Source: Guillardia theta CCMP2712 (Eukaryota; Protista; Cryptophyta). Taken from it: 64,000 nt of DNA. Made by a program: the position numbers and the translations under genes. The stretch is taken from contig NW_005434656.1 in assembly GCF_000315625.1 (NCBI RefSeq), forward strand, positions 417,741-481,740, written 5' to 3'. The notes under the pieces were generated by a model, which did no database searches, was not told the origin of the DNA, and was given only the letters and a program-made list of their open reading frames with translations. This document shows, one piece after another, positions 44,583 through 55,726 of the stretch. The number at the start of each line of letters is the position of its first letter. Positions within the stretch are counted from its first letter, which is position 1.

Positions 44583-46272
44583 TTACACGTATTCTTTTTG
44601 AGTTTCTGCTGACGCACTTTCATAAACCTGCAAGTTTGGAATTCATCAGTACCGATCAGAAGAAGAGGAAGCCATGACTCACATCCATCTGAATGATCAT
44701 GAAAGAGAAGAAGCACTTGGAAGTAACATCAAGCAATGCATAGAGGATTGATTCTGCGCTAACTCCCAATCCGCCAGTCCCCACACTCAACAACCATACG
44801 AATGGATAAACTGACCATGAAACCACAGTGAGCAAAGACACTTTGCCATACCTGTCAAGTAGTGAGTGAGAAGCATATAAGGAGCAGTAAAATTACAGTT
44901 CGATTCTATCCATGTCATATTTGTCTGCAAGGGTCGTTACTTCAACTTCTCCAAAATCAATCAAATTACCAAGAACACACTGACGGAAGATTCTTACAAG
45001 CGCAATGACAACGGGAATGTAGACAACAAGCCCGATGACAAACCAAAGCCATTTGACAGTGGGCACGAGTGCAACAGAACCCATGTAACCAGCAAAAATC
45101 ATTCCCACTGTTCCAAAACATGTCAGATATATTCTTCTTGAGAAAAGAAACAAAAAATATGCGAATGTGCCCAAGAAATTAAGAAAAGTGATTAGTGTAT
45201 GCTTGCATAACACACTCTCTAACTTCATCTTCACGCAGGTCACATCAGTCAAATGGTTCACATGAACATCCGAGAGCAACCTCACACTAAGTGAGGCAGC
45301 AAGAGACTTACTGTCCGCGCCCATGATGGCCGCGATCATCCATTGCTCCTCGCCAGCCAGCAGCCCAATGTTCAAGATCATCAGAGGTGTTGTGATGAAC
45401 CAGTCGATATATCTGAAGACTGTTAGGGGAAGCTCTTTCCTCAACCTCTCCGTTCCACCTGACGTAGAACATCTGACGACATCCCATGATAGTCTCCCAT
45501 CCCATTCCGCTGATCATCGCAAAATAGGAGAAGGACGCCACTCCGCATACAAATGCGTTTCTACACAGCTACTCAGCACTCCGTTGTGAGAAAGAGGGTC
45601 AGTAATACATGTAATAGAACTTGCGGACGACAGGATCCGCATTGACAGCCTTGAATGCCATGAAGAGGGCCGTAAAGAGGAGTGCAATCCATGCAAGCAC
45701 ATCAAAGATGGCTCCTGCAGCGCCGTATCAGAGGATTGAACTCAACCAGAGCGGACGGAAAGGGCAAGACAGGTGACAAGACCATCATGGGGATTTCATA
45801 GATCAATGGCAATCACATGTCAAAGAGATGTTATTGACCATCAAGCTGGATACGAAAGTTCTTCACTATGATGTCTCCCATCAAAGTATAACATCCCAAT
45901 GGCACACAGGGGTCGTTCACCACCCAATCACAGCGGTAGAAAGGAAATCTTTCTCGTGGACAACACATGGAATTCACAACGATGGGATGGTACACTGGTT
46001 CTGATTCCATATCATCACACGTGATCTCCTTCAACGACTCCCCTAACTTGTTATCAACAATCACGTCCTCTCCCTCGTCTCCCTCTAATTGCGTGTGCCT
46101 CCTCATACCCCCCTCTCGCCCTCTCCCACAGGATCGAGGAAGGAGCTGTGCATCAGCAGGGAGCAGGAGCAGGGAAAGAGGAGAGGAAGAGCTTACCGGA
46201 GGCTCCTATCTCCTGGATCGCCAGGCAGTCTGCAGGCAGCAGCCTCGACGCCTCCATCCCCTCCTCGACCAT
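44583..46272 (-). CDS. Microbial (type-1) rhodopsin with DTN motif; 8 exons, first exon 46197-46272
   Basis: Spliced protein MVEEGMEAS...GAIFDVLAW...RYIDWFITTPLMILNIG (helix C)...WSVYPFVW (helix F)...LDVTSK (helix G, retinal-binding Lys)...QKEYV*. Confidence 0.95.
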
Positions 46273-48979: not shown

Positions 48980-49400
48980 CTTGTCTCCTCTTACCTTCCC
49001 TTCTGTCCTCGTCTCCTCTTACCTTCCCTTCTCTCCTCGTCTCCTCTTACCTTCCCTTCTGTCCTCGTCCCCTCTTACCTTCCCTTCTGTCCTCGTCTCC
49101 TCTTACCTCCCCTTCTCTCCTCGTCTCTTCTTACCTCCCCTTCTCTCATCGTCTCCTCTTACCTCCCCTTCTCTCCTCGTCTCCTCTTACCTCCCCTTCT
49201 CTCCTCGTCTCCTCTTACCTCCCCTTCTCTCATCGTCTCCTCTTACCTTCCCTTCTCTCCTCGTCTCCTCTTACCTTCCCTTCTCTCCTCGTCTCCTCTT
49301 ACCTTCCCTTCTCTCATCGTCTCCTCTTACCTTCCCTTCTCTCATCGTCTCCTCTTACCTTCCCTTCTCTCCTCGTCTCCTCTTACCTCCCCTTCTCATC
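48980..49400 (+). repeat. 28-bp minisatellite, ~15 copies
   Basis: Unit GTCTCCTCTTACCT(T/C)CCCTTCT(G/C)TC(C/A)TC repeated head to tail. Confidence 0.92.
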
Positions 49401-49518
49401 TAGGACTTGGTCTCATTTCCAACTTGAGGAATGGTGGGTATTTTACCAGCAAAAGGTAGGGGTATTTGCGACTTAGAAACCAAGGGGTGGGTAGGCTTGA
49501 GGAAACAAGTGGCGAAGG

Positions 49519-51169
49519 ATGCAGTTGGTGGTGGAGTGCGGGGAGGGGAGGAGGCGCGTGGTGGGGGAGGAGGAGGAGCTTCTGCCTTCCTCCTCAGTCG
49601 CATTCCTGGCTCAGATACTGCAGGCGAGAAGCTGCCTCTTGTCCTCTTCCTGTGCTGAGACCTAGCAGATTGATGCCGAGGAAAGGCTCGCGACGACCTG
49701 CTGCGAGTTACAACCAGATCGTTTGCTCTCAGACTACAATGTGAGTTTGCTCCTCCTTCTTCCCCCCTCCCCCCATCTCTCTCTCCTCTCCTCTATCGAC
49801 GTCACGCTGGCCGTCAAGTCTTTCCGTCAACTGCTCTAACTCTCATCCTTCTGCCTTGGTAGATCAAATCCGGCTCCACAATCTTCGTGCTGGGCAGGTT
49901 GAGAGGAGGGATGCCAGCGAGCGCTCCTCGCATCAAGATGCCTGTGCTCTTTCGCTTCCTTTCATCGCGACCGCCTGACGCCTGCGCGCGCAGGCCAACA
50001 ATCGCATGCACAGCAGCGCTGCACTGAGGACGACGGACATGTGGTCGAACGTAAGAGACACCTCTTGCTTGCCCTCGCTGTTCATATGAGCCATCAGGTG
50101 ATTGGAAATGACTTCGGCAAAGCCAACGATGCTGGAGCTGTTGCTGGGGTAGGGAGACCTGCTGATCTCAAGCTTCTCGCGCGCTGACTTGAGGTCCCCC
50201 TGCAGTCAAGCTCCGGTCAGAACGCCTACGAGATGAGTCAGAACCTCATGACCCTGGCCAAGTTGAGCGGTGACTTGTCCCTTCTCCTCTCTCTCCTCTA
50301 CTCTCTCTCCTCTCCTCTCTCCTCTCTTTCCCCTTCCCCCTTCCCCATCCTTTCTCCTCGTGCATCTTAGCCTCACATGCTGTCGTCCATGCAGGTGCAG
50401 CCAAAGGAGGTGCCAACAGAGGAGCGTGAGTTTCGCATCCTGCCCTCCCACTGCTGGCCTTCGGAGCCAACTTCTCGATGCAATGACGAGCTTCATGTGT
50501 AGGTGCAAGAAATGTGGGGAGATCGGTCACCTTGCCTTCCAGTGTTTCAACATGCTCACTGGTTCGCTTCTCGTCTCACGCTCTTGCTCGTCGTTGTAAG
50601 GGCCACACAGGCAAGAAAGAACAAGCTGGTGATGTCAGCAGCACCTCCAGTGACGACGACGATGAGAGCGAGGAGGATCGCAGATCTGTCAGCACTGTTT
50701 CCAGCACCTCTTCTGAAGAAAGGTTGGAGCCCCTTCTTGCATCCCTCCATCCTGACCTCCCTCTCCCTCCTTCACTTTTCCTCCTTCCCTCCATCCCTTC
50801 GCTAACCCCCCCACCGGCATCGGCTGCTTCTCATCCTCTTGGTCAGGTCGCCCAGGAGGAAGAGCAGGCAGCAGCACGAGAGGTCGTCGCTCTGAGACTC
50901 TCTGGCGCTGCTAATGGGGTTGTACAGGTCGGAGCTCCCGCACAAGAGAGATCGGGAGCACTGGAGAGACCGAGATCATCGCGACCGATCAAGATCACCC
51001 AAGAGGTCCAAGTCGGAGAAGTCGGAGAAGAAGAAGAAGGACAAGAAGTCCAAGGACAAGAAGGTGCGAGCACGTCTGGCGCTGGCCGGCCTCAGGAAAG
51101 CTGACAACCTGACAGAAGAAAGACAAGAAGAAGTCTCACAAGAAGGACAAGAAGAGGAGGAAGGACTGA
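49519..51169 (+). CDS. Ubiquitin-like domain fused to CAX-interacting protein 4 (CXIP4)-like zinc-knuckle/RS-rich protein
   Basis: Exons 49519-49623, 49666-49740 and 49863 onward give a 76-aa UBL ending RLRGG, then MPASAPRIKMP/ANNRMHSSAALRTTDMWSN/VIGND, CKKCGEIGHLAFQC and a K/R/S/D-rich tail. Confidence 0.82.
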
Positions 51170-51426
51170 TGAGAACAAGTACAGCGACCGGGAGGCCCGA
51201 TCTCACTTAATCTAGAGTGGTTTCATTAATAAGTGCACGCTGGCAGGAAATGAGAGTGAGCAAGCAGCATGATTACTTGATGCTTCACAGATACCACACG
51301 ACTCTCTCTTTCTTTCTTGCACCGAACTGACATAAAGAAAATCCTTCCAAGCCAAAAGTTCGAGACTGTCTGGTGTGAGTGCGGAAGGATAAACAGCACT
51401 CAGTCACCACATACTTCCGCAGATCT

Positions 51427-54310: not shown

Positions 54311-55726
<1,416 letters not shown>

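Follow-up and report, generated by a model that had tools for sequence, protein, structure and literature searches.

Comparative sequence analysis confirms that the CXIP4 protein of the cryptophyte Guillardia theta is preceded by a genuine, divergent and unannotated ubiquitin-like domain (UBL), fused to it in frame. The gene lies in a stretch of 64,000 nucleotides (nt) of the G. theta CCMP2712 genome (contig NW_005434656.1, positions 417,741 to 481,740 of the forward strand; hereafter the window), for which a first-pass annotation, made from the sequence alone, had proposed such a hidden fusion. The full G. theta CXIP4 gene has 12 exons and encodes a precursor of 286 residues, and the annotated model of 210 residues is truncated. 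The interpretation that I favour, with some reserve, is that G. theta CXIP4 is made as a cleavable UBL-GG precursor of the FUBI or ubiquitin-fusion type.

In the NCBI annotation, this gene corresponds to GUITHDRAFT_151521 (P0001, 210 amino acids, scaffold JH992982.1), which is 100% identical to the window exon and possesses a PF13917 zinc knuckle. Its coding sequence starts at position 49911, leaving out the UBL, and no gene is annotated between 48920 and 49910. Mapped onto the window, P0001 falls into ten exons that span 49911–51169 and are separated by introns of 45–125 nt. Upstream of these, the segments 49519–49623, 49666–49740 and 49863–49910 translate to 35 + 25 + 16 = 76 codons, from MQL(VV) to GRLRGG, in exact agreement with the earlier proposal of three segments of 76 codons that begin with MQ, end with RLRGG and run into MPASAP. 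A single exon (49863–49943) holds both the end of the UBL and the CXIP4 start MPASAPRIKMP, uninterrupted, and two in-frame stops are found close upstream of the ATG at 49519. The features of the gene are the following (a slash marks a junction, here and below):

49519..49623, + strand: exon 1, UBL residues 1–35 (beta1-beta2 and helix alpha1), from the translation; alignable with the first exon in five cryptophyte genes
49624..49665, + strand: intron 1, 42 nt, GC-AG, phase 0; contains a TAG in frame and a branch-like CTGAG, and ends in a tandem acceptor (TAG/CAG)
49666..49740, + strand: exon 2, UBL residues 36–60 (..EERL..LSDYN), in register with ubiquitin 39–60
49741..49862, + strand: intron 2, 122 nt, GT-AG, phase 0; its position DYN/I is kept in five environmental contigs
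49863..49910, + strand: exon 3, first part, UBL residues 61–76, ending R72-L73-R74-G75-G76, from the translation
49911..49943, + strand: exon 3, second part, CXIP4 N-terminus MPASAPRIKMP; annotated start, collinear with plant CXIP4
49994..50050, + strand: exon 4, ANNRMHSSAALRTTDMWSN, from the exon map of P0001, as are all exons below
50098..50148, + strand: exon 5
50206..50269, + strand: exon 6
50395..50425, + strand: exon 7
50503..50561, + strand: exon 8, CCHC zinc knuckle CKKCGEIGHLAFQC (PF13917 at 27.3 bits, PF00098 at 22.8 bits)
50611..50722, + strand: exon 9, Ser/Asp/Glu-rich segment
50847..50882, + strand: exon 10
50928..51063, + strand: exon 11, Arg/Lys/Ser-rich tail
51116..51169, + strand: exon 12, Lys-rich end and stop codon

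A profile built from the UBLs of five orthologues, G. theta excluded, covers the whole of the G. theta domain (32.6 bits, E 4e-9), and the best score among 1000 shuffled versions of that domain was 10.0 bits. In the same leave-one-out procedure the Rhodomonas UBL scored 36.7 bits, so that G. theta is no outlier in the family. A phmmer search against the PDB retrieved mono-ubiquitin (E 3e-5 to 1.5e-3), with residues 39–76 in register with residues 39–76 of ubiquitin. The domain is ∼33% identical to ubiquitin and possesses one lysine, in agreement with the first-pass annotation, which counted a single lysine and none at 48; the residue at position 48 is a cysteine. The structure prediction that it had called for returned a predicted beta-grasp fold: AF2 with an alignment of 10 sequences (pLDDT 81.4, pTM 0.65) gave the element order b-b-a-b-b-3(10)-b, and nearly all of the top 50 Foldseek neighbours of the model are ubiquitin, mostly at a TM of 0.76–0.81; since this alignment held two ubiquitins, which biases it to a ubiquitin-like model, these values are supportive rather than independent. 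A profile search of the PDB with the ubiquitin-containing alignment is circular, and is not used as evidence. Searched separately against Pfam, the exon pieces gave no match.

The C-terminal 210 residues are, by sequence, the orthologue of plant CXIP4 and animal SREK1IP1 (PTHR31437). They match PF13917 (zf-CCHC_3) with 27.3 bits (cut-off 27) and PF00098 with 22.8 bits (cut-off 20.8), and the knuckle is a single CX2CX4HX4C, as is characteristic of zf-CCHC_3. BLASTP aligned P0001 with the plant CXIP4 P0037 (44% identity over 110 residues, E 1e-27) from residue 1 to residue 1, and the match continues through the CCHC knuckle. The N-terminal CXIP4 motif MPAxAxRxxMPANNRxxSSAAL is likewise present and collinear from residue 1, which bears out the suggestion that MPASAP is the native CXIP4 N-terminus. 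In Arabidopsis, CXIP4 is a nucleoplasmic and essential protein whose depletion leads to missplicing, and residues 1–39 of the protein show full conservation across land plants (PMC11702985); the nuclear localization and the role in pre-mRNA splicing are known for the Arabidopsis protein only (PMC11702985). CXIP4 is small, very basic and zinc-binding, and it probably associates with nucleic acids.

I then surveyed the relatives of these proteins (61 relatives of P0001 at E ≤ 0.001, and the best 120 of 260 relatives of the Pterocystis protein P0016), which include sequences from land plants, streptophyte algae, oomycetes, Rhodelphis, a chrysophyte and animals. The UBL was found only in cryptophyte proteins and in Pterocystis; the surveyed plant CXIP4 proteins start without it, as the first-pass annotation had stated, and so does animal SREK1IP1. 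The fusion is not the curiosity of a single genome that it could have been taken for: the survey shows it family-wide in cryptophytes, and by sequence the UBL-CXIP4 architecture is cryptophyte-wide, in most members. Fusion proteins were identified in the following organisms:

Rhodomonas (P0003, P0062): junction ..TIRGG/MPASAPR, transcript-derived, PF00240 before CXIP4
Hemiselmis tepida and relatives (P0004, P0005, P0006): junction ..SLKGG/MPATAPR, transcript-derived, PF00240
Hemiselmis-like (P0007): junction ..SLAGG/, transcript-derived, PF00240
another MMETSP organism (P0009): junction ..RIRGG/, transcript-derived, PF00240
the centrohelid Pterocystis (P0016): junction ..RLLGG/MPATAGR, transcript-derived, PF00240 and PF13917

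In the transcript-derived orthologues other than that of Pterocystis, PF00240 directly precedes MPA(S/T)APRIKMPANN, and the orthologue UBLs exceed the PF00240 cut-off, at 26–44 bits. Genomic contigs of uncultured cryptophytes from JGI (L002, L003/L004, L005, L006, L018/L019) also encode the fusion, with ..GG/MPASA.. inside a single exon in all. Four fusions (P0003, P0016, P0008 and P0009) stood above 148 bits in a profile search of the whole library, a search dominated by polyubiquitins, whose repeat scores sum, so that more divergent fusions could be missed. Among the environmental relatives, the dN/dS of the UBL coding sequence is 0.16–0.51, which marks the UBL of this family as translated and kept by purifying selection.

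Within the family the UBL varies widely, with 23–40% identity between genera and about 27–39% to ubiquitin, and 0–3 lysines versus 7 in ubiquitin. Its end is constant: nine distinct tails were found (RLRGG, TIRGG, SLKGG, SLAGG, RIRGG, RLLGG, CLRGG, GLRGG and RVHGG), in which the diglycine is invariant beside a variable position −3 (R, K, A, L or H). Neither the R72-L73-R74 tail nor the Ile44 patch is conserved across the orthologues.

The introns provide a second line of comparison. The environmental contigs possess two GT-AG, phase-0 introns in the UBL, one of 102–148 nt at ..LVE/ERTG.. and one of 119–555 nt at ..DYE/I... The boundaries Q35/Q36 and N60/I61 of G. theta fall in the same alignment columns, and in the same phase, as the introns of L002, L004, L005, L006 and L018. 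Because its columns match those of GT-AG introns in five cryptophyte contigs, the 42-nt GC-AG segment sits at a conserved intron position. This intron (49624–49665), for which a GC donor and an in-frame stop had been reported, indeed contains both, the stop being a TAG, and it ends with an AG acceptor; the CTGAG branch-like motif is located 11 nt from its 3′ end, and its length is slightly below that of the 45–57 nt introns in the same gene. Alternative donors were considered and rejected, namely a GT after codon 26 of exon 1, whose use would remove the helix that aligns with the orthologues, and GT sites inside the 42-nt segment, which would give introns of <30 nt. The acceptor is a TAG/CAG tandem (NAGNAG, 49660–49668), and use of its second AG would remove one glutamine and give a UBL of 75 residues, with the frame kept. 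The intron at the DYN/I position is read through in the genome-based Rhodomonas salina model P0008, and also in the protein P0019.

Expression in G. theta was assessed from the 31-mers of the region 49420–51220, with 181 words sampled. In 11 RNA-like runs from five studies, 0.29–0.34 of these were present, and in the DNA-like runs X14–X16 (study P8) 0.76–0.93. The annotated exons with the 3′ untranslated region are expected to account for at most 0.22–0.24, and adding the spliced UBL exons and a short leader raises the expectation to 0.31–0.36; the observed excess over the annotated model is ∼3 standard deviations. This supports the presence of transcribed sequence beyond the annotated model, to which the spliced UBL exons, or for example an unspliced leader, would fit alike. 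For G. theta itself, I consider it very probable that the three UBL exon segments are transcribed and spliced.

How would such a protein be made? The precursor would consist of a fast-evolving, lysine-poor UBL of 76 residues, followed without a linker by a complete CXIP4 with its own start methionine. Being translated first, the UBL may aid the productive synthesis of its small, basic, zinc-binding and nucleic-acid-associated partner, after which a deubiquitinase-type protease would cut behind the diglycine and free the highly conserved MPA..MPANNR N-terminus, as found in the CXIP4 of organisms without the fusion. By analogy with known fusion precursors, the UBL would thus act as a chaperone, that is a co-translational helper, or as a mask that is removed to expose the CXIP4 N-terminus. 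A cut after the invariant GG is likely, because the diglycine stands at the exact end of the fold, no linker follows, and the partner retains its own methionine and the invariant MPA..R.KMPANNR motif, which is the extreme N-terminus wherever CXIP4 is unfused. Several sequence features expected of a cleavable fusion were found: the UBL is at the extreme N-terminus, there is no linker, the partner exists unfused elsewhere, and the junction diglycine is kept despite the divergence of the UBL. A role of the N-terminus in periplastid targeting was also considered and rejected, as the sequence MQLVVECGEGRRR has no signal-peptide-like hydrophobic stretch and all 76 residues belong to the UBL.

A number of observations weigh against this interpretation. 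On its own, the G. theta domain reaches only 17.4 bits with Pfam PF00240 (E 0.0038), below the cut-off of 25.4 bits; its Ile44-patch positions (A44/T45/C47/C48) are degenerate relative to ubiquitin; and AF2 on the single sequence was uninformative (pLDDT 43), beside the bias of the alignment-based model described above. The first intron is unusual in three respects, with its GC donor, its 42 nt against a minimum of 45 nt in the rest of the gene, and the stop it introduces in frame if retained. The exact 38-nt pattern of exon 3 had 0 matches in the JGI metagenome and transcriptome contigs, and the 286-residue G. theta protein is absent among the relatives of P0001 in the protein collection. In G. 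theta, the evidence that the UBL exons are transcribed and spliced is indirect, and in every species cleavage at the diglycine is deduced from the sequence. Finally, at least one relative can dispense with the UBL: a Baffinella-like cryptophyte expresses CXIP4 without it.

That relative is represented by four independent assemblies (L001, L038, L039 and L040; JGI 3300017318, -321, -322 and -306), in which a leader of 53–61 nt precedes ATG-MPASAPR and nothing UBL-like is found in the in-frame sequence upstream of that ATG. The protein cluster of these UBL-less cryptophyte transcripts includes Baffinella frigidus, and the case looks like a secondary loss of the fusion. Unfused CXIP4 is found in plants, oomycetes, animals (as SREK1IP1) and Rhodelphis, as well as in the Baffinella-like transcripts. 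Outside the cryptophytes, the Pterocystis UBL scores 11.3 bits with the cryptophyte UBLs and 10.7 bits with ubiquitin, and so is no nearer to the former than to the latter; it is equally likely that centrohelids acquired the fusion separately or that they share its origin with cryptophytes. P0016 is from Pterocystis sp. (EukProt EP00299), and a close relative, P0218, which has the same NNRMYSSAALQT motif, begins at MPATAGR without a UBL. With the fusion present in most cryptophytes, apparently lost in Baffinella and present in one centrohelid, its gain and loss can be traced.

It is conceivable that the fusion is made and then stays uncleaved, the UBL serving as an integral domain, for example for docking to the proteasome or the spliceosome as in Rad23 or SF3A1. 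The depletion of lysines (0–3 versus 7) would shield an intact fusion from chain building of the ubiquitin-fusion-degradation type, and the variable residues before the diglycine may cause canonical ubiquitin-specific proteases to miss some of the orthologues. However, the diglycine is invariant at the domain boundary through nine distinct tails, with no linker, and the partner retains a start methionine and a motif that form the extreme N-terminus in all unfused homologues; moreover, FUBI is cleaved despite being poor in lysine (PMC8354635). I therefore regard a permanently attached UBL as unlikely. To a similar degree I doubt a more elaborate version of the cleavable precursor, in which removal of the UBL would be a regulated switch that gates the entry of CXIP4 into splicing, as for Sde2, having evolved independently in cryptophytes and the centrohelid, and in which the freed, lysine-poor UBL may be a lineage-specific, chain-terminating modifier.

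A further explanation takes the G. theta UBL exons for an untranslated relic in decay, or for an upstream open reading frame in the leader, with the functional protein starting at 49911, as annotated and as in Baffinella. The GC donor, the very short intron and its in-frame stop agree with this, since the unspliced leader would encode an upstream frame of 48 codons, as do the sub-threshold Pfam score, the loss of Ile44, Gly47 and Lys48, the complete loss of the UBL in one relative, and the lack of a G. theta transcript in the JGI contigs and the protein collection. Against it, the frame is open over three exons, whose splice signals are usable and lie where the intron positions are conserved; the match to the orthologues is full-length, in register and as strong as that of Rhodomonas; the ubiquitin tail RLRGG is intact; and the 31-mer share in the 11 RNA-like runs exceeds the maximum for the annotated model. 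On these grounds a relic seems quite unlikely.

It could also be that the freed UBL is itself the point of the fusion, as a lineage-specific modifier that is conjugated through its diglycine and produced in stoichiometric amounts with CXIP4. The G. theta tail R72-L73-R74-G75-G76 is identical to that of ubiquitin, and a recent preprint claims conjugation of FUBI (10.1101/2025.07.06.663376). However, the tail and surface patches vary among orthologues, in a UBL that evolves fast (23–40% between genera), and no dedicated E1 or E2 turned up, with no search aimed at one having been made. The first-pass annotation had suggested that the released domain might be conjugatable; in G. theta, with its RLRGG tail, the free UBL may be conjugatable, but as a general property this finds no support, since the tail is not conserved in the family (TIRGG, SLKGG, SLAGG, RVHGG and RLLGG occur among the orthologues), nor is the Ile44 patch. 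A modifier as the purpose of the fusion is accordingly improbable. Lastly, a chance open frame or an artefact of the gene model, to which only the sub-threshold Pfam score could point, is contradicted by all of the comparative evidence and refuted for practical purposes by the conserved orthologues and intron positions.

Returning to the cleavable precursor, its closest analogue is not Sde2 but FUBI-eS30 (FAU, in holozoans), along with further ubiquitin-fusion precursors. FUBI shares 36% identity with ubiquitin, has one lysine, and requires its diglycine for cleavage (PMC8354635). As in FUBI-eS30, the G. theta protein has a divergent N-terminal UBL (33% identical to ubiquitin), with one lysine in each case, and a diglycine directly followed by a small, basic, nucleic-acid-associated partner that is unfused in other lineages, and neither UBL is a source of ubiquitin. 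The two differ in that the G. theta partner is a splicing-associated protein with a CCHC zinc knuckle and not a ribosomal protein, that UBL-CXIP4 is found in Cryptophyceae and one centrohelid, and that its UBL is far less conserved among species. In addition, FUBI has a known protease, USP36, whereas UBL-CXIP4 is known here from its sequence, and its cleavage is presumptive.

Sde2, to which the first-pass annotation had compared the protein, is also linked to splicing, and is made behind an N-terminal ubiquitin fold ending in GG, whose removal by deubiquitinases activates the C-terminal part (PMC9508853, PMC13572447). One half of that comparison stands, as CXIP4 too would be a splicing-linked factor behind a ubiquitin fold, but this likeness concerns mechanism and function only, by analogy, and Sde2 is not the nearest relative in kind. 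PF13019 (Sde2_N_Ubi) gave no match at E ≤ 1 with the G. theta UBL or with six orthologue N-terminal segments. The junction also differs, with GG/KGG in Sde2 and GG/MPA in all UBL-CXIP4 members, so that no N-terminal lysine degron is exposed, and the partner, CXIP4, is unrelated. These differences support the proposal that the fusion arose independently of Sde2.

Ubiquitin fusions have been described in G. theta before, with 24 ubiquitin genes and ten fusions reported by Sibbald et al. (2019; PMC6332867), who also warned that small ubiquitin exons escape automated gene prediction (PMC6332867). Their list of fusions (Table 2) contains no CCHC or CXIP4 partner (PMC6332867). The fusions of G. theta and Bigelowiella natans, and the universal Ub-eL40 and Ub-eS31, resemble UBL-CXIP4 in their N-terminal ubiquitin fold ending in GG and in having small basic or zinc-binding partners (L40, S27a, HMG box, RING-like), and the G. 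theta genome is common to both sets. However, that survey covered ubiquitin-coding regions, whereas the UBL of CXIP4 shares only about 33% identity with ubiquitin, and the moiety freed there feeds the ubiquitin pool, which is unlikely for UBL-CXIP4. The Arabidopsis CXIP4 paper mentions ubiquitin 0 times (PMC11702985), plant CXIP4 and animal SREK1IP1 differing from the G. theta protein in that they begin at MPA.. without a UBL, and none of the papers searched combines CXIP4 with “ubiquitin-like”. The UBL-CXIP4 fusion belongs with the known natural N-terminal ubiquitin and UBL fusion precursors.

With the fusion, a splicing-associated gene that is conserved and probably essential receives a corrected model in a reference algal genome, and the case illustrates that divergent UBL exons are still overlooked by annotation. 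The list of natural UBL-fusion precursors is short, and gains a new class of partner. Among splicing-linked proteins, only Sde2 is known to be made behind a ubiquitin fold, and CXIP4 would be the second. The fusion also provides a natural experiment, independent of FUBI-eS30, on why small, basic, zinc-binding, nucleic-acid-associated proteins arise as UBL fusions, and is relevant to ubiquitin-fusion biology, to the function of CXIP4 and SREK1IP1, and to the annotation of protist genomes.

Some further features of the locus can be described. A CT-rich tandem repeat with a 28-nt unit (48983–49397, 14.8 copies, 95% match) lies between the preceding gene and the UBL-CXIP4 gene, immediately before the latter and where its promoter is expected, and a second CT-rich stretch, of low complexity, lies within the intron after exon 6 (50282–50334). 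On the other side, a plant-type Tom20 gene (PF06552, 51427–52630, − strand) converges on the CXIP4 gene, their stop codons being ∼260 nt apart. Annotated neighbours at a greater distance include a bacteriorhodopsin-like gene with PF01036 (∼45911–46272, − strand), probably a G. theta microbial rhodopsin, and a PP1-type phosphatase with STPPase_N/Metallophos (∼54311–55169, + strand).

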